The notes below the pieces were generated by a model. That model was not told where the DNA came from, did no database searches, and saw only the letters and a list, made by a program, of their open reading frames with translations. Position numbers and translations under genes: made by a program. This document shows positions 7,078 to 52,151 of a DNA stretch of 64,000 nucleotides, piece by piece. The stretch comes from Trichosphaerium sp. ATCC 40318 (Eukaryota > Protista > Tubulinea): the NCBI GenBank assembly GCA_038496445.1, contig JALMLS010000085.1:62001-126000 (forward strand), in the 5' to 3' direction. Position 1 is the stretch's first letter. The number at the start of each line of letters is the position of its first letter.

Positions 7078-8137
7078 TTACTCAGTAATAGCTGCTTGTT
7101 TATAGCTATCAAACACTATCATTTTAAGCTCGTCAACTGACATTGATTCTATTTGTAGCTTTTTGTTCGCTATTTCTATGAACAAGATCAACTTTTTGTT
7201 TTCGGGTTTTACTATTAATTCTTCCATTTCACGTACTTCTGAGAATCTTTGCAGGCACCATCGATGTTGATAGTGGTATTTCCAACACAGAGCAAGTTTC
7301 AGTCTTTACATAGTAGATGTAATTCTTCTAAGGAACAGTCAATAGGCAACAAATTGTCAAGGTGGCTTCTAAAATTTTTCTTACTGCCTCTTCATCTTCA
7401 CTATCTGAGTCATGTGTTGAACTACCTTCCCCGTCTGAGTCAGTTGAAGTATCTCCAAGATCTCCAGTGTCTGAGTCACTTATTGAAGTGCCTTCGCAAT
7501 CAGAGTCATGTGTTGATATGTCTTTGTTGTCCGAGTAAGGTGGTACCATGTCTTCCATATCACAACGCCCACTAGTTTCATGGTACATGCCACCACGAAG
7601 ACGTAGTACCATAGTAAGCTGGGGACCAGTATATAGCCTCCCTGCTCTACGACTAAGAAGGGCACCTGCGGCTATCCGTTCATCGATAAGATCCCTGTAG
7701 GAAACGCGATAATTCTAGTTATCTTTTTACCTGTTAACCCTACTTCTTGCATCGTATCATTATCCGTTAATTGTCTACCTGTGTTTCGTAAGCTATGATG
7801 GCAGTAACGCTAAAAAAGGTAGGCACCGAAATAGATAAGACGCTGTTGGTCGAAAGGGATCCCCACTTCTTCGTAGATTAAATTTTTGAGCTCTTCAACA
7901 GTATTGGAAGGTTCAACTTTAATCCATATTTTTTTCCCTGTTAAAGTCCCCTTTGTGCTTGTTAACTCTATTGCCACATTTGATTTTTCGTACGATAATG
8001 ATGGAGTGGCCTAGCGGAAAGTCTGATGCTTCTTCACTCTCTTTTGGCTTTTGCACGTGCTCTTCTGACTTGGTTATGTCTTTAGCATGTGATATCTTCT
8101 TTTTAGATCTCGACTTACGTCTTAATACATTACCCAT
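7078..8137 (-). CDS. Ubiquitin-like domain fusion protein with N-terminal MG/polybasic leader and acidic C-terminal extension, about 5 introns
   Basis: Spliced: MGNVLRRKSRSKKK...IIIGTLTGKKIWIKVEPSNTVEELKNLIYEEVGIPFDQQRLIYFGRQLTDNDTMQEVGL...MVLRLRGG-MYHETSGR; the 3' exons are less certain. Confidence 0.75.
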
Positions 8138-23906: not shown

Positions 23907-26900
23907 TTATAGTACCTTTCTACCAGAAGATGTTGAAGAAGAAGAGTTGAATGTTATGAGACCCTTAGACCTCAGGTAAAGAATAGGAGGTACAGTAAGT
24001 AAAGTCAAAGCACCAACCATCTGAACATAACTCCAAAGTAAACCAGAAGGTGTACTCTTGATTAAACTAGGTGTATGATTCTTAGCACTCTTTAGCTTAA
24101 CAAGAAGAGCCATTTGCTTCTCAAGAGCTCCAAATAATTTATCAACATCTGGAACATGTGCTTGAACACCTACTTTTGTATCTGCAGGTACGTTATCAAA
24201 AGAAAAACCTGATAATATTTTTTGTAATCCCGATATTTCTTCCTTCCATGCATCCAAGAGGCCTTTAAGTTTTTTGGCAGCAAGAAAGTTTTTATACTCT
24301 TGTGTCATAGCTGAATGGTCTCCAGTACTGTTTATAGATAAAAGAGATAAGTAATGCTCAAAAAAATCGAGTTTGTTGTTAAGTTTGATCAATTCTTCTG
24401 AACTCGTCGAACTAGCAATAAGTACTTCCAATGCGCCGATTCTCGTCACCAAGTAAAATGCAAGTGCTGATATAAGTAATAAGCATACCATGCCTGTATA
24501 TATAAAAATAGAACTAGCTCCTGCGGCCATAACTGGTTCAGTAACAGGTATAACTTCAACATCTGCTTTTTTCTTCTTTTTCTTTTTAACAACTTCAACA
24601 TTCTCTGTTGACGCTGATGGCTCTTCCGGTGTTTTCATCAAATACTTTTCTGTTTCTTTTGTCGAAGCTAAAAGCCAAGTCTCTACAATAGTCTTTTGTG
24701 TTGAGATAGAAGCCTTTTCAATCGGTCCTAAAAATAATAAATAAAACAATTTAAAAAAATATTCGATAAAAGAACCGCGTTTGTAACAAAGGCTACGTTT
24801 GCTTCTATCTAACCCACAACTTTAAGGAGAGTATTTTTACATTGTTTAATATTAAATATTGTAATTGTAATTGTAATTTCAGTGATAAGAGCATGCTCTT
24901 GTATTGTGGTGACAAGCGTCCATGAAAAATAACAGGAAAATATGTGCACGTACCCTTCAACCATGTAGATTTTCTCCAGCGTACTCCTGCGTCTACAGAT
25001 ACACTAACATTACCATCTTCCTCAACAATAATCCAATTTTCTTCAACAGTAAAATAATCAGCATACGGAACATCTTTTGCTTGTCCTTCCGTCTCAATAT
25101 TCAAAACCCTAAAAAGGAAAGTAAACAAACAAAAAACGTGTACAGTTCACTGAAATGAATCAAAGAAATTGGACTTACTTTTCACTTGAGAATCGAGCAC
25201 GTTGAGTTTGATCTACCCTTGTGCTCTTAGGACCACCTACGGGCGTTAATGATTTAAACGTAAGTGAATCGAACCTGGGAAGTTTGTTCTGACAGGAGCT
25301 CTGTAGGATACTTTTCGAGTCATACAGCTGTTATCGTCGGCAAGAAGCCACGGAGATGCCGTGAGTTCTAAAATTACAAATCAGCAATGAGTTTGAAGCG
25401 TAGAATCATAAAATTACGTAATTTCAAAAAAAATACCTGTAAATTCATTATTTTCAGCGTGAAGCTTAGTAAAGTCGTGTGAGTGCCAGAACAAAGCGAA
25501 AAACTCTCGGCAATCAATTGGATAACTCTTATCAGCAACTCTAGAACCTAAATAAAAATAAGGATACGAGTACAAATGCCATTTTTTTTCAAATAAAAAA
25601 AAAGCACCAATGAAAAGTATCCATACCTTTAACTTTATCAACAAACGTGCAATGCTTAGAAGTAGCAGATAATGGTGGCATAGTAACCTAGATATAAAAA
25701 ATAAGATAACCATGAATAAGAATGACACCAAAAGCAGTATTGAGAGCAACCCGAAGCCATAACGTTAAATTCAAAAAAAGAAAAAAACGCCGGGTTAAAA
25801 TTTTAAGCGACGGTTAAAATTACCTCCGGAAACTTTAGAGATTTGGCCGGGGATTCCGTAACAGGCGCCGATTGATTGTCTCCAGTACGTATAAGTGACT
25901 CTATATTATCTGGACGACCATCATCAATTGATCCACGCTTTTCTTTTTTGCCCTTTTTTTTCTTTCCCAATTTCTGCTTTTCTCCATTGTTTTCACCTTC
26001 TTGATCCTTATCCTCCATTACGTGAGATGTTTTTTTGCTCCCTCGCACAGAACCAAGTTTAGATGACCTACTACAGTACGTAAGTACCAATTAAAAGCTA
26101 AACACGCTTGTTTTACGCCTTTTCGTGCTGATCTGTAAACTTGGCCTTTAAACGTAATAAAAACATACCTTTTTGATTTAGAACCGCTTCTCTTGCGTTT
26201 AGGTTGACCCCCAGAAGAACCTGGAGGCTCTTCGACAATATTATGGTTTTCCAACACTGAAGTATCTATTTTTGATCTAATAAATAAAAACGCATGGTAC
26301 GTGCCAACAAGCGTCTTAAAATAGAAATAGAAAGTCCAATAATGAACAAAAAAACGCGTTTGACCAAAACGCAAAAAAAACCTTCAAAAATCGAAACCAC
26401 ACGGTTTTTGTGACTCTGTGCGCTATCCCACAAAGAGTGAACGAATACGTACTTGGTGGAGAAGATGGTGGAGTCTTGGCGTTATCAGCAACTGTATCTG
26501 GTGTGTATAGTGATCCTCCTGATGTTGGAGTGTTTATACTACTGAAGAATGTTAGAGTTTCGGGTTTTTTTGGCTTATCCGCGGGGAAAGAGTCAATAAC
26601 GTTTTAGTTAGTTGAATCAATCATGTCACATTTCTTTCTTCCTTTCTTTGTTTTCTAGTACGTACTTTCTTGAAGCTACAGTAACAGCTGCTTGTTCATC
26701 TATATCCACAGCATCATCATGAATTACAAGGTCTTCTCCCCTAAACAGATACTTTTTGTTACTATTTTTGCTTCTAATAGTCTAATAACACGTGCAAGTG
26801 TGCTGCTATGGCATCAACAATAGATCTTAAGGCTCTATCACGGAATATGAAGGATGAATATGTAAACTGCGAGAAGTTAGAGTTTTTGTTGTCAGTTACT

Positions 26901-27313
26901 ATTTACGAACCTTTTTTTGACCTTCTGGTGTACACGCTGCTATTTCCATAGCGTTTGGAAACACGTATGCCGTATTAGTACGGCGGATCTTAACAATATC
27001 ATCAAATAGGATGGAGTGGCGCTATACAGTGTTAAGATAGCCAAAGAAGGAGTTATACGCACCACAGACTTGAAAATAGGAGAATCAAACGCAATACGCT
27101 TATTTGTAATGTACATACGCCCCTGGCGCAGTATACCTTGTAAATTATACGCACAGGAGTAATCTTGGCGGTTTTAGTAAAGGTAAAATGGAATTAGTTT
27201 TTACCGTCTATCATTTCACGGTCCTTGAAGCCAAACAACGTAAAGAACTCATCCTCCTGTTGTGTTCGTTGAATATCTTGAGGTGGCGTTGAACTGTTCG
27301 TATCATCACTCAT
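23907..27313 (-). CDS. GRAM + VASt (StART-like) domain membrane protein, Lam/GRAMD1/VAD1-type sterol transporter
   Basis: YSCAYNLQGILRQGRMYITNKRIAFDS (GRAM); KDVPYADYFTVE...WRKSTWLKGPIEK (VASt); C-terminal TM helices. Confidence 0.88.
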
Positions 27314-27519
27314 TACACTAACACGTTGTGGTAATGAGAATTCTAGATGGATAGAGAGTGATGCGGAGACTAACGGATGACTTTGGTTTGTGTGAAATTT
27401 TATTTAGTTTGTCCGATGACATTTAACTCTTTTTACATACGCTAACGCTACAACGCTATCAAACAGCTCGGAAAATTAGTATAAAGATGAAAACTTTCGG
27501 TTGCCTTTTTCTCAGCCTA

Positions 27520-27780
27520 ATAAATTACCAGTGCGCACCTTTAGTGCACTATTTACGCCTAGCCGGGCAATATTAGATACACCACGTACCGTTGAGTAGA
27601 TACTTTTCCAACGTAGGAGAATAACTGCCAACACCCCACAAAATCAGACAGCTACTATTTTGTGGACATTGACGCGTTAGCGTGCGACTGTAGGAAGCAG
27701 AAATTTCCAATTGAGATATACCCGACAACGAGATTTTTCAACCTTCTAAATTGTGCACTAAACGCACCGCAAGGTAGATT
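27520..27780 (-). other. Structured non-coding element closed by an inverted repeat
   Basis: TTTAGTGCACTATTTA (27540) pairs with TAAATTGTGCACTAAA (27748), 15/16; internal 9-bp hairpin CCACAAAAT/ATTTTGTGG. Confidence 0.4.
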
Positions 27781-29344
27781 CGGTGCTGCCTAAGCTTTTT
27801 TAAAGGCCATAGTGGACTTATATCGTTTTTTTTCTGCAGCCTTTGTAAATTCGTCGTGAATGCAATGAGGGGCAGGATAGACTAACTTAAGGCGTGTGGG
27901 AGCGTTTGGTATCTTTAGGGTAGACCGTGAGCCAATATCTCTACACAATTTCTTGTCACGTGGTAGAATTTCCCGAAAGTTTGTTTGGAGCTGTTTGGAG
28001 CTACGTGGAGTTTTAGCACGTGTTTAGCGAAGAAAGGCATGTGTACCTAAGCTTACGTTTAACCTGCTTCGTCCAATGACATTGTAATTTTGCAAATCAC
28101 AATTATCTCTGCAATAGATTATGACCACCTCAACCATAACCACTTGACAGCAGTGTAAGTGTGGAGCGAACTTCTACGTTGTCATGGATACTCTTTGAAA
28201 TGTTTTAACCAGAGGTACGGCAAGCTGAGGTATCTAGGAGTAAATGAATTGTTGTTTTTTACCGTGAAAACTTTATGACAAGATGTTGTTAGCGTACTGT
28301 AATTGTAGCTCACTCGGCACAACATTTATGACAGATTGTATTGAACTTGACACCAAGATGGCTTTCTCAGTACCATATGTCACTCTATCAAAACAGTTAA
28401 CTATTTCTGACGCGAATTAATGTATATAAGCGCACTACCTTTGCTTTCACACGTACACTAATCCTATTGCTTACCTGCTGCACTATAAATTATTCCAAGA
28501 GTCTACGATGTCGTTTAAGGGCAATTTACGGTCGCCCATGCGGACGTCGGCTGAAATAAACTTATTTTAGTGTCAGGTTTTTTTGTGAAGGATGTCGTGA
28601 CACTTCACCCTTACACCACTATCGCGTGGGCGGTTTAAGTTACTTTTTTTGCTGTTAGAGACTTTGTTACTCGTTCTCCATTTTCTTCATGACCGATTTG
28701 CGTTATGTATCCACCAACTCTGAAAGCACGCAATGTATGTATTGTTAGTTGTGGCGAGCGAGTTTTAAAACACGGTCAAATAGTTTCTGACATTAATAGC
28801 CAATCTACTTGTAGAACACTCGAGCGCTTCATCGCATTCCTGGCCTTGTTATTTTTTGAGTGCGCTTCTTCGTTTACAGGTTCAGAGTTACTCGTATAGA
28901 CGATTTCTGGACGTCTTTATCGAGCAATGTTCGCTCTTGCTATGTATCTCCTTTGATTGGTGCTGCGTCTCGAGTTAATTAGCATTGGCGATCTAACGTA
29001 AGTATAGCTACGTTAAACTAGTTTTTTCAACCCAACCTCGCTCACAATAGGCACTACATGAGTGTGGTGCTTATTTTGATTACAAGAGGGAAATTAAAAC
29101 CTCGGTTTAATTGGAGGCATACCCGCTATGGTTGTCTACCGAGATTAACGCGGAAAATTAGCATTACGACTTGTCTTCTTCAAAAAAACAAATTTGTGAA
29201 GAAGAAAAACGCTTGTTTCATTTCTACTTTGTACAGGTTTCCTGACATGTCTTCGTCATAGGCTTTCGTTGCTGGTTGCAATGCTCGACGAGTTTAGCAG
29301 CTTTGAATGGCATGAGCATTAGCTTCAACTGCATCCTCAGCGTC

Positions 29345-29433
29345 AACCTCAGTGTAGGTTGATGCAGATCTCACCACTGTAACTTACACCATGAAGCGGT
29401 AGTGAGATCCACATCAACCTCCTCTGAAAGGTC
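29345..29433 (-). ncRNA. Pre-miRNA-like hairpin
   Basis: Minus strand AGGUUGAUGUGGAUCUCACUAC / GUGGUGAGAUCUGCAUCAACCU: 22 contiguous pairs including 3 G:U, plus an imperfect basal stem. Confidence 0.55.
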
Positions 29434-29845
29434 ACCTACAACAACGTGTTATAAAACACATGAACAACAAAAATTGAATAACACAAAACAAACCAAAAAA
29501 AGACATTACTATGTTCTAACTCTTTACCATGTCTTGGAGTTGTCAGGCTCTGTACATGCCTTAAGTGTAAATCCAAAGTTAGCATAATAAAGAGTTTCAA
29601 CACAAATCCTACTTCGTACCCTCACATAGGAGTATGTTCGATGTTGTTTTACTTATACTAGAAAAGATTGACAAGCCATAATACGTATGGGTACAAGGCG
29701 TACTAACCGCTGTTGTCCACATTAACAAGTTCTTGTGCAATAATAGTTTAAAATCACATGCTACACAAAGTTTGAGGACTCTTAAATGTGGTAATTGTAC
29801 ATTGTTTATTTTCGTTGCGTATTTTCTTGGTTTAAACCTTTTTTT

Positions 29846-31742
29846 TCAGCTAACAAAACTATCCTGATAAACAGGCCTTGTAGTCTTACGATACTCAAAT
29901 TTTAAAGATGTTATCTTTTTATGTTTAATCTTAAGTCCGTGGATCTTTCGATATGCTTTTTTCCATTCTCTGTAGTAATGAAAAGAAAGCTCTAAGTCAA
30001 GAAGATCAGTTTGACGAAAGCGTTTAAGAAAAAAATGAGAAGACGAAAGTTGTTACTTTACCTAACACGTCAAGTTCGTATAGTGTATATCGTCTTTTTT
30101 TATTGTTATGACGAACGACAAACTCATCTTCACGACCAACGCCACCATAATTCTGACAGTTATCGTTGTTGTATTTAGCCTTCATTTCTTTTACAAATTC
30201 AGCAAAGAGTTCCTTTAAACAAGTAAGAAATTACGCTCTTAAACTATGTCACGTGATAAAAATACAGGCTGGCTACACTACCTTGGTTCTTTCAAACCCG
30301 GATTTAACTTCTTTATCGTGTGGTAGATGATATAGAGCATTTTCAGAGTCAACCTCTGCTTTGTAGTTTGCTGCAGCAAGTTCACAGAAAAATGAAGATT
30401 TATCTCTTCCACTTATGAACCTATCATCGTACCTTGGTTGATATTAGTTTTCAGTTGTAATATTATCACTGACCGTCTTACCTAGGAAATCCTTTGGCTA
30501 TTATAACATACGGCTCAAAACCACGTATGTATGCTGCTGGGTAAGATGAATTTGCAAGTACATATTTATCGTATAACTGTGGACCTGAGCCTCTTGGGTA
30601 ATACAAGTGACAAGGTTCTAATACATGCGTAGCAAGTAACTCAAGCAAGGAAGATTTTGTTTTAGGAACCTAATCAGTAAGTCACTGCAGTCCACAAGTT
30701 TCGGTGTTGGCAAGATGAAGTGAATGGGAAAGAGTTTTTATGCTGATATTGTAATTGACGTTGTACCATCTTATTGTAGAAGTCCTCGACTAAACTAAGT
30801 ATTTCACCACGCTCACCGAAAGTCTTGGCATAAGGATCGTGAATATCTGGAGTAAACTCGAAGCTTGGAATGGCCAAGTACTTTTTTTCTACAGACTTGT
30901 AAACAAAAAGTTTTAGAAAAAAATTATCAATAGTACGTTGCTTCAACTCCATGAGTTTAGACGTATATCTAGATGATAGCAATCTCTCGTAGATATCCTC
31001 ATTTGGAATGAAATCGACATCAACCAAAAATAGCAAAGAAGCTGTTTCGTTAGAGAGGTCAACAGCAACATTTCGAAGAGTCTATTTAAAGTTAGAAGAA
31101 TGTATAGTTGTATGCTTGCACATTTCATTTTTTTTGTGTATACCAACGCACGTTGTGTGGGTATTCATGATCATTAGGCTTATACTGATGGCCTTTCATA
31201 ACAATGTGCAAGTCAACTGACAAGTCAAGATCATTTGCACAATAATTATACATCACGGAATCTCTTTGCATTTTACTAGTCACATACACTGCAGCTGAAA
31301 TAGGTCCTTTCTATTTCAATTTATATTCAATAACAGTAAATATAAAGTACCAACCCATATTTTAGTCATTAGAGCAAGTCTTGAAAACCTAAAGAGCCAA
31401 AATTTAATGGATAAAAACGTATATAAAATCCCAAAAAAAATCAGAAAATCGGACTTACCTTTCCGCAGATAAATGTGTTACAAGTATTATTTGACTATCG
31501 TTGTAAACCCATCTCGAGTGTATACTCCAAGCCATATCACTTTCGGAGTAACTCGTACAACTAAGAACTTCTGTTTGATAAGTGATACGCTTTATAGACG
31601 TCGTATCGCTGCGTTTTCTACGGTTATTTCTTAGTTTGATAAATGAATGACTGCATTACGCTCTATTGAGCCAAAGAAACCCTAAAACACAGAAAGTAAT
31701 GATCAACAGTAAGCGTAATCGGAAGGAGCCCAATTTTGTCAT
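29846..31742 (-). CDS. Glycosyltransferase family 49 (B4GAT1/LARGE-like), type II membrane protein
   Basis: N-terminal TM; VTHLSAER..WKGPISAAVYV, YPHNTLRNVA, FLVDVDFIP, AIPSFE, GFEPY..., PRYDDRF..GRDK; 3' end approximate. Confidence 0.88.
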
Positions 31743-32288
31743 TTGTTTAATCGATTTAACTTTGGTTTCCGTTTTGCTCCTTTCTATTAACGGTTGTTAC
31801 TAATACGATCTATACATGTTGTAACACAAATGATTTGGTTGATTACCCAATCTATCACGTGACTAAAACGTTTTAAGCCATCTTCACAGCATCAGCGCTT
31901 TAAAATAAGTAACAATCGCGATTGTTTTTGTTTCTAAAACACGTGACGCTTTTATTTGGATGTTGTTTTGTAGATATCCTTTTGGTGCAAAAATGTTTCA
32001 CGTCTATCAACGGTTTTTTTATCAGAGCTTTAGAATATGGTACAATGCCGTCATACTGGCAGAGCATATACAGAAATTGTTTTGTGTTGAATTAGCTGGT
32101 GACACTAGAACATAAAACTATGAATCTAGAAAGCTCACCAGCAACCAAGACACCATACTGCAAGCGTCATAAAAACAGTTGTGATTTTTATTGTGTCTGG
32201 AGTTACCCGTACACTAAACAATACGCCAATGTCACGTGAAGGCACATATTTTTCCATAGCAAAAGTCAACACTTGTTCTCATACACAC

Positions 32289-33437
32289 ATGTACAAGCGA
32301 ACAACTATCCTCTTGTCCCTTTATGTGCTAGGTGCGAATCAATTTTATCATCGATACAACCTAACAGTATATTTTAAAAGCATGTGTGGCTTTGCCACCA
32401 GGAAACTGGGTCCCATACGAAGCCATGACTGACGAGTTTAACAATGGATTTAACTTTTCCAAATGGTGTGGGTTTTTGCCGAAAAAGACTGTTTTGAAAC
32501 AAAGCTCATGTTCTAACGCTTGTATTAGGAATAATCATAACCCAGTATGGCAAGGAAGAGAACCTAGTTGGTTTGATCCCAATAACGTTGAGGTAACAAA
32601 TGGAATGTTGACTCTTACGATGAGACATGCCTCACCGCCCAATGAACCTGCTGGATACCACGACTATACCTCTGCGGCTGTACAGAGTAAAGCTAATACG
32701 GTTTATGGATACTTTGAGATCAAAATGCAGCCTATGGATAGTTTGGGTTAGTTCGAACTTTTTTTGGATGGGGTTTTTTTGAAGGTTGTTTTTGACTTTG
32801 TGTTTGTTCTGTAGGTTCTTCTTCTTGGTGGTTTAGTAAAGGAAAAGGTCCAGATAATGGATGGCGCACAGAAATAGATATTTTCGAACTTGGCGCTGGT
32901 GCACCTGGTCAAGAAAACTCGTTTCATATGAATTTGCACGTTTTTGATTCACCAAATGCTTATCACTCACAATGTCCTCCTGGAGACAAAAAAAGATGGA
33001 ACGGACGTAAGTCACCACCTAATTGATCTAATACATTTAGCTTAAAACGGTTTTATTTAGTGTACACTACACCGTTCAAACTTGCTTCCGGTTTTCATGT
33101 TTATGCTCTTGAATGGACCAAAGAAAAAATAGTATGGTAAGATAGCACAAACTTTTCTCGCTTCTTCGATACTTGCTCTTTTGTTAATGCTTTCAAATAG
33201 GTATGTTGATGGTAAACCAGTTAGGACAGAGGACAACACATGTTTTCACACGTGCGTTTTTCTAAAAATAACTTTTTTTTATCCATAACGAGTTTTACTT
33301 TATTCAGGCCTTTGCACATGGACTTCGATTCTGAGACTATGTATTTCGGACTTCCGCCATTTAATACATTACCTTCTGTTTATAAAATAGACTATGTACG
33401 CGCATACAAGCAAGCAGGTTCCGTTGAAGTACAATAA
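32289..33437 (+). CDS. Glycoside hydrolase family 16, secreted, resembling bacterial beta-porphyranase/agarase-type GH16
   Basis: Signal peptide; TDEFN, WQGREPSWFDPNNV..TNGML.L, YGYFEIKM, catalytic EIDIFE, FHVYALEW, WYVDG, YKIDYVRAY; 6 GT-AG introns. Confidence 0.88.
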
Positions 33438-46285: not shown

Positions 46286-46479
46286 TGTCAAAAAAAAGTC
46301 GAAAATTCGGCACACTAACTATCCTATATTATGCCATAGGAACTATTTAGAAAGCCCCCCTGAAAGGGGGAGTTTGTGGGGGAGAGCCTAGCGGCGACTG
46401 AGCGCCATAACCCAGTTGTCTCCCTTTGTGGCGAACAGTTCAATATCACTTTGACATTTTTTCGACTTTTTTTTCGACA
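46286..46479. mobile_element. MITE-like or structured element with ~20-bp imperfect terminal inverted repeats and a GC-rich hairpin core
   Basis: TGTCAAAAAAAAGTCGAAAA ... TTTTCGACTTTTTTTTCGACA; core hairpins CCCCC-TGAAA-GGGGG, GGCG/CGCC, GGGAGA/TCTCCC. Confidence 0.4.
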
Positions 46480-51070: not shown

Positions 51071-52151
51071 ACTGCAACGTGTATCTAATATGTTCCAGCT
51101 CTTTTTTCAAGTGACAGCGAAGCAATAAAGTATCACGTGTCACGCAAGGTCTAGTTTATTAGATGAGAAAGGTCCAACACGTCAATGGACCACAAAACCA
51201 ACCAAGTGATACTGAAATCAAAGAAAAAAAACAGTACGAAGTTAAAACAATACTGTTAACGCCATGTATTGATATTACGTGCTGAAGGACCATCTCCTCG
51301 TCTGAACACTGGTCTATCTATCCTATTGTTGCGAAATATATTGTCCGTATCATTCAAGTTTGCAACAGGTTTGGCAGGTATCAAAGTGTAAGATCTTGCA
51401 AGTTCTAACTAACGCCCTTCCGTTATGAATACTGATAGAATATTCATTTTGTAAGTTCTGGAGTTTTGCAAGTTCTGTCAGATTTTGTCAGTTTTGATAT
51501 CTCTTCCAGAAAAACAAAACTGATAGGCTGGAAGTTCTGTCAGTTTTGCAATGTTGAACCAGTGCAATGTGAATGCATCACATTCTATAACTCATGACAA
51601 TGTACCTTGCTTGCCGTCCTTGTAACAAACCATGACATAAGTGACCATGTTTACAAAAAATGTGTTCCTTGAATACAGTTAACGGGGTTACTTGAACGCA
51701 GTTAATGACATTGAAAAAAAGTAATAAGTACTATAATTACATGAATAGTGTTAACAAGATGTCACAAAAATCTGGAAACACGAGCGTGTGACAGCACCAT
51801 TTTGGTTATAAGAATCGCCTTGTGTGCTTGCATCTTCAGCTTTATCCAAAGATTTCGTTTCACATCACATCTAAGGTTGGTTGTGAAGCAGAAATTTTAA
51901 CAGCTAATTTTGATAATAAATTTGACAAAATCTGTTTGCTTTCATTGGTCAAACGAGCAACCTGACAGGATCCATGTAAAGGTTTCGCGTCAAGCTACTC
52001 ATTTCTAAAGAAAGCCAAACTAAGTTAGTTTCAACAACGAAGTTAAGTTCAATTCGAAGTCTAAATATAGTAAGAAACTCAAGCATTACAACTCCTAACA
52101 CTAAACGGACAATAAAACTGATTAGTCAAACACATTCCTTTAAATACTGTA

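Follow-up and report, generated by a model that had tools for sequence, protein, structure and literature searches.

A single-copy, transcribed hairpin of Trichosphaerium sp. ATCC 40318 as a candidate plus-strand miRNA or hairpin-siRNA precursor

We found that an 89-nt hairpin in the 64-kb stretch of Trichosphaerium sp. DNA analyzed here (the window) lies in the second exon of a short, capped and spliced RNA that is transcribed from the plus strand and contains no open reading frame of note, and that this hairpin is present once in a genome that also encodes RNA-silencing enzymes. Our preferred explanation, which we hold tentatively and with rather less than even confidence, is that the plus strand of the locus encodes a miRNA or short hairpin-siRNA, that this gene is young and specific to its lineage, and that the hairpin is a candidate Dicer-processed precursor. 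We give about the same likelihood to a neutral inverted repeat carried in a non-coding transcript of low level. A preliminary description of this DNA had proposed an undescribed miRNA or hairpin-siRNA precursor on the minus strand; the precursor part of that proposal is partly supported by the hairpin's structure, its single-copy status, its transcription and the presence of machinery genes, but the strand that it assigned is not.

The hairpin is the one dominant structure of a short non-coding Pol II RNA that is capped, spliced and transcribed as a unit of its own. Under our preferred explanation this RNA, with exons at approximately 28799-28997 and from 29262 to at least 29590, would act as the primary transcript. 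A Dicer- or Drosha-type RNase III encoded by the genome would cut the stem of about 30 bp to yield a duplex of about 21-22 nt made of the two arms (Table 1), and the duplex would then be loaded into Argonaute; dicing, loading and any target are predictions of this model.

Table 1. Positions of the hairpin, its host transcript and neighboring features in the window.
Feature	Position	Strand	Evidence
Hairpin, 89 nt	29345-29433	+ (strand seen as RNA)	sequence, folding, window scan
Candidate 5p (5' arm), 22 nt	29356-29377	+	sequence, fold
Terminal loop, 21 nt	29378-29398	+	sequence, fold
Candidate 3p (3' arm), 22 nt	29399-29420	+	sequence, fold
Putative TATA-like element TTTTAAAA, ~30 nt before the mapped transcript start	28764-28771	+	sequence only
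Exon 1 of host transcript	28799-28997	+	run X1 contig
Intron of host transcript, 264 nt, GT..AG, GTAAGT donor	28998-29261	+	run X1 contig
Exon 2 of host transcript, as far as the contig reaches	29262-29590	+	run X1 contig
Dispersed repeat, 88 nt, inside exon 2	29541-29628	+	copies in genome
Convergent neighbor gene, at least 10 exons, CT..AC introns (42-97 nt)	29779-31848	-	contigs
Neighbor exon segment resembling 29331-29367, same orientation	30337-30376	+	blastn
Site pairing 19/22 with the plus-strand 3' arm	31005-31026	-	neighbor mRNA

The hairpin reported in the preliminary description is real: the 22-nt arms, the 21-nt loop and the basal extension were all found in the sequence, and a repeat search showed that the inverted repeat grows, imperfectly, to arms of 29 nt (29349-29377 and 29399-29427). 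When the 22-nt arms were paired by hand, the inverted repeat that they form proved to be imperfect at three sites (arm positions 10, 11 and 20). As had been claimed, these sites form U:G or G:U wobbles in the minus-strand RNA and C·A or A·C mismatches in the plus-strand RNA. The minus-strand arm duplex is paired at all 22 positions, including the three G:U pairs. The plus-strand arm duplex is paired at 19 of 22, with symmetric mismatches only, and the stem of about 30 bp on that strand contains one 2x2 and one 1x1 C·A internal loop.

Folding with shuffled controls on both strands, which the preliminary description had recommended, gave -38.6 kcal/mol (z -6.2) for the plus-strand RNA and -44.7 kcal/mol (z -5.9) for the minus-strand RNA, and none of 200 dinucleotide-preserving shuffles was as stable on either strand. 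The plus-strand hairpin has an MFEI of about 0.93 (-38.6 kcal/mol over 89 nt, with the GC content of 0.46-0.47 of matched stretches). When the window was scanned with RNAfold in sliding segments of 90 nt, it ranked first on both strands, with values of -36.7 and -40.7 against a window mean of -13.3 (sd 4.6), and when the whole of exon 2 was folded it was still the dominant structure in the MFE and centroid structures alike. The next most stable 90-nt folds of the window, at -31 to -33 kcal/mol, lie at 51926-52015 (minus strand, with an uninterrupted stem of 17 bp), 7541-7630 (minus strand) and 46336-46440 (both strands). Measured against the structural features common to plant and animal miRNA criteria, the locus shows a single hairpin with a 20-24-nt duplex of no more than five mismatched positions, and is free of large asymmetric bulges and of secondary stems inside the duplex.

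Structure by itself is no proof of function, and hairpins of this kind are not unique to the locus. Counting inverted repeats of 22 bp with at most three mismatches and a loop of 3-40 nt, we found two in 264 kb (one in the window and one in 200 kb taken from other contigs), compared with about 0.1 in block shuffles of the same 264 kb, so that the genome-wide total, though above chance, may be tens to hundreds. The other hairpin of this class in the sampled 200 kb (contig C17, 200978-201053) has arms rich in A/T runs. Because such hairpins stand well above shuffle expectation genome-wide, a mutational source for them exists, and this favors the alternative to which we give the same tentative weight as to a precursor: that the hairpin is a neutral inverted repeat in transcriptional noise, with no selected small-RNA function, even if Dicer may nibble at it. 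It would have arisen by a small inverted duplication, possibly from scraps of the neighboring gene, and would be carried on an unstable RNA from a divergent promoter region at 28615-28799. The rank of the hairpin as the strongest single fold in 64 kb argues against this alternative, and further evidence on both sides comes from the transcript itself.

To characterize transcription we aligned contigs of four transcriptome runs, considered RNA-derived because their contigs skip canonical introns, to positions 26600-32400 (5801 letters). A 547-nt contig of run X1 joins the two exons listed in Table 1 across the intron, which supplies the transcription expected of a miRNA precursor in the form of a plus-strand, capped and spliced contig. 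Directly before 28799 this contig carries a SMART-type tail (ending in …GAGTACGGG; loose 5' tail GGTATCAACGCAGAGTACGGG), which we take to be the SMART template-switch oligo with its three G residues, marking the cap (5') end; position 28799 is therefore the capped 5' end of the RNA. As no GGG occurs in the genome upstream of 28799, strand invasion by the adaptor is unlikely. The hairpin's 5' arm begins 94 nt inside exon 2, and in the mature RNA it lies approximately 293 nt from the 5' end. The longest ATG frame of the two joined exons has 16 codons, indicating that the host RNA is non-coding, and no open reading frame crosses the hairpin: the preliminary description was right that all minus-strand frames contain stops here, and the plus-strand frames are closed as well. 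With stops in six of six frames and only those 16 codons in the spliced RNA, we rejected a coding exon.

The RNA appears to be scarce: of the three runs with coverage of the neighboring gene, one contains it, at about one fifth of that gene's k-mer depth. Such low and patchy expression is what transcriptional noise would predict. Proper capping and splicing, the TATA-like element and the canonical GTAAGT donor, however, speak against noise. So does, weakly and at low depth, the comparison of the two exons with the assembly, in which the run X1 contig shows no difference in the 329 nt of exon 2 but four substitutions and a 2-nt deletion in the 199 nt of exon 1. Allelic or strain variation, or assembly error at low depth, may account for the exon 1 differences, which are too few for constraint to be read from them. 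Since contig and assembly agree over exon 2, with the hairpin reproduced letter for letter, the three mismatches are independently confirmed and show no A-to-G editing. The library is of poly(A) type, in which an intact hairpin represents unprocessed RNA only. An AATAAA at 29588-29593 on the plus strand lies near the contig end at 29590, which is probably an assembly break inside the 88-nt repeat; from this signal the RNA's 3' end is predicted at about 29605-29615. A look-up of exact ORFs for further copies of the transcript found nothing on record.

A contig of run X6, from which five contigs aligned here at 95-100% identity to the window, represents an unannotated minus-strand transcript at 28319-28615 that skips a 56-nt CT..AC intron (28383-28438). 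Runs X6-X8 have contigs of 95-99% identity in this neighborhood, and their source may be a sister species or strain. The interval 28615-28799 may be a bidirectional promoter, from which this transcript would diverge from the start of the hairpin RNA; the suggestion of such a promoter upstream is a further point in favor of noise.

The intron of the hairpin RNA is 264 nt long, compared with 42-97 nt for the introns of the neighboring gene. Two small hairpins lie within it, one of 13 bp near 29046-29078 and one with 16-nt arms at 29171-29208. We rejected the locus as a snoRNA host gene, the intron having no Rfam snoRNA and only a mild fold (z -2.1).

The direction of this transcript bears directly on the strand. 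The preliminary description had called for an RNA from the minus strand, but the only transcript over the hairpin is read from the plus strand, as judged by its GT..AG intron and by the template-switch adaptor at 28799. In the contigs of the runs aligned we saw no minus-strand RNA over the hairpin, a result that leaves room for rare read-through RNA on that strand. The contigs of the convergent neighboring gene, which is transcribed from the minus strand, end (3') at 29779-29839, beside a minus-strand AATAAA and about 350 nt short of the hairpin. A functional miRNA or hairpin-siRNA precursor on the minus strand, fully paired with three G:U wobbles, would nonetheless have the more stable of the two folds, by the values given above, and all three arm differences would be wobbles on it. 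The preliminary description had taken this pattern as a sign of selection on a folded minus-strand RNA. We give that argument little weight, because wherever a transition hits a single arm of a perfect repeat, one strand gains a wobble and the other a C·A mismatch, and the neutral probability that three such transitions share one polarity is 1/4 for either strand and 1/8 for the strand that had been named. Moreover, the plus-strand duplex with its three C·A mismatches is at least as miRNA-like, symmetric loops being typical of miRNA duplexes. We therefore regard a minus-strand precursor as improbable. For the noise alternative, the same simple transitions are those expected of a decaying repeat, and their shared polarity (p = 0.25) is unsurprising.

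The hairpin is single-copy in the 70-Mb assembly, and we found no second copy of the surrounding 1 kb in those 70 Mb apart from a separate 88-nt element. Neither arm occurred elsewhere in the genome at three or fewer mismatches beyond chance level; a near-match to the 5' arm at C89:160369 was rejected as an 18-nt chance match, a reversed-pattern control having given an equal count. A degenerate arm pattern had no match in metagenome contigs. The preliminary description had named many dispersed copies with target-site duplications, the hallmark of a MITE, as an outcome that would count against an miRNA; what we found is one copy, and a MITE or other repeat identity for the hairpin was rejected. 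That the hairpin represents the terminal inverted repeats of a MITE or other mobile-element relic is thus already largely refuted and is, in our estimate, the most improbable of the readings considered, its one attraction being the genuine dispersed repeat that begins 107 nt downstream.

This repeat, the 88-nt element, starts 120 nt 3' of the hairpin's 3' arm, 107 nt beyond the hairpin base, and forms no part of the hairpin. It occurs in at least 10 copies of 82-91% identity with sharp ends (TGTCAGG...CCCTCACA), contains the AATAAA internally, and has probable 4-6-bp target-site duplications (flanks read by eye rather than counted systematically). It resembles a miniature mobile element or a SINE-like unit. 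As a structured RNA it was rejected, its fold giving z values of 0.1 and -0.5.

No Rfam family matched in the window at gathering thresholds. The sub-threshold matches to miRNA families (MIR827_2 at 38.6, MIR5269 at 30 and mir-583 at 21 bits, with gathering scores of 67, 60 and 80), which fall on both strands and include plant and animal families, reflect hairpin shape and chance and not homology, and a known RNA family was rejected with the best score at 38.6 bits against a threshold of 67. The lack of an Rfam family at threshold, and of any second copy or family from which a motif might be deduced, also weakens the possibility that the hairpin has a non-silencing role, as a structural element of a long non-coding RNA (a protein-binding stem, or a stability or 3'-end element) or as a DNA palindrome that forms a cruciform. 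Its position between two convergent transcription units, near the 3' end of the neighboring gene, would suit such a role, as would the good fold on either strand and the fact that it is an inverted repeat in DNA too. Nothing specific points to this role, however, and we think it has only a slight chance of being correct.

A candidate precursor of this kind presupposes an organism that encodes Argonaute and a Dicer-type RNase III, and the preliminary description had suggested looking for these genes. A six-frame family search of the genome found both. PAZ and Piwi domains occur together at C37:385235-387255, and again at C549:4784-6460 with a PAZ score identical to that of the first locus; the two are probably allelic or duplicated contigs and not two distinct genes. 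A locus at C34:29062-31313 has a Dicer_dimer domain, a PAZ domain and two RNase III domains in canonical order; Dicer_dimer and RNase III domains are present on contig C6, and a further RNase III locus on contig C12. At C23:231013-231907 lies a compact locus in which two RNase III domains were matched, but neither PAZ nor Dicer_dimer. Compared with solved structures, its first domain scored highest against human Drosha RIIIDa (E 2.6e-8), by a slim margin over Dicers (1.7e-7), and its second domain had no match in the PDB.

Among characterized systems, the closest match in architecture is provided by the intergenic miRNA genes of Dictyostelium discoideum, which depend on DrnB/RbdB. [quoted passage not shown] In both cases the locus is lineage-specific and has no homologues, and the genome is of amoeba type and encodes Dicer-like proteins. 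The Dictyostelium genes, however, were defined by DrnB-dependent 21-nt reads, whereas the present candidate is defined by structure and a long-RNA contig; pri-mir-1176 is reported as not polyadenylated, whereas the transcript here is spliced and carries an AATAAA; and neither Dictyostelium precursor has sequence similarity to this hairpin. Amoebozoan miRNAs are few, mostly species-specific, and accepted on small-RNA evidence only (PMC11014262), so that the absence of homologues is no objection to the candidate.

The hairpin also resembles animal exonic or lncRNA-hosted miRNAs in its stem of about 30 bp interrupted by mismatches, its loop of more than 10 nt and its location in an exon of a spliced lncRNA, and the two-RNase III locus whose best structural match is Drosha, by a small margin over Dicers, recalls the animal Drosha/DGCR8 systems. 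Unlike animal miRNAs, it shows no convincing basal UG or other microprocessor motif, and the host is not an animal.

A third comparison concerns the origin of the hairpin. According to the model of Allen et al. 2004, young plant miRNA genes reportedly arise by inverted duplication of a fragment of the target gene. Like such genes, the locus has a foldback that is nearly perfect and looks recent, carried in a non-coding Pol II unit of its own, with an arm and flank weakly similar to a nearby protein-coding gene to which its RNA is antisense. Unlike in young plant miRNA genes, the similarity to the parent is marginal (E 0.017 and 0.45) and spread over two exons, and the arms are about 22-29 nt in length rather than hundreds.

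The gene in question is the convergent neighbor, which is single-copy, has a weak Glyco_transf_49 match in one exon (E 0.003 in an exon-by-exon search) and yielded no paralogue when its DXD-motif exon was used as the query. The first similarity, found by blastn, aligns positions 29331-29367 (the basal flank and the first 12 nt of the 5' arm) with the exon segment at 30337-30376 at 31 of 37 positions with one 3-nt gap; its E value of 0.017 is marginal and post hoc, and its score is higher than those of 159 other real 1.5-kb chunks of the genome (best of 160). The second is the site in the neighbor mRNA at which the plus-strand 3' arm can pair, inside the exon encoding the LVDVDF (DXD) motif. 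The pairing includes two G:U and has mismatches at positions 2, 12 and 22, and among the non-self sites of the window this one ranks first. With shuffled arms such sites occurred at 0.12 per 128 kb, which corresponds to about 0.003 expected for the 1.45-kb neighbor mRNA, but this match too was found post hoc, and by blastn alone it is weak (E 0.45).

The preliminary description had proposed a genome search for targets complementary to either arm. At three or fewer mismatches no complementary site to either arm was found elsewhere in the genome beyond the reversed-pattern control; within the window, with G:U allowed, the best site was the 19/22 one in the neighbor mRNA. The want of a convincing target is consistent with transcriptional noise. 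That the hairpin was born from scraps of the neighboring gene and is antisense to it is, on these weak sequence resemblances, a lead and not a finding. A more specific version, in which a newborn cis-acting miRNA or hairpin-siRNA gene, derived partly from those scraps, would regulate the neighbor by a 22-nt RNA from the 3' arm acting on the DXD exon, seems to us unlikely. If it were true, the locus would be an example outside plants of the birth of an miRNA by local inverted duplication of its target. We also considered and rejected a decayed tandem paralogue of the neighbor: tblastn of the exon peptides on 27800-29790 gave noise only, indicating that there is no collinear pseudogene.

To a specialist, lineage-specific hairpin RNAs are to be expected in amoebae that possess Dicer and Argonaute, and finding one is no surprise. 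At present the locus is a well-documented candidate only. If its arms are diced, however, it would add to a protist lineage in which miRNAs are few, young and species-specific an miRNA gene with a mapped cap site, an intron and a host transcript, and would offer a concrete locus for asking how such genes arise.
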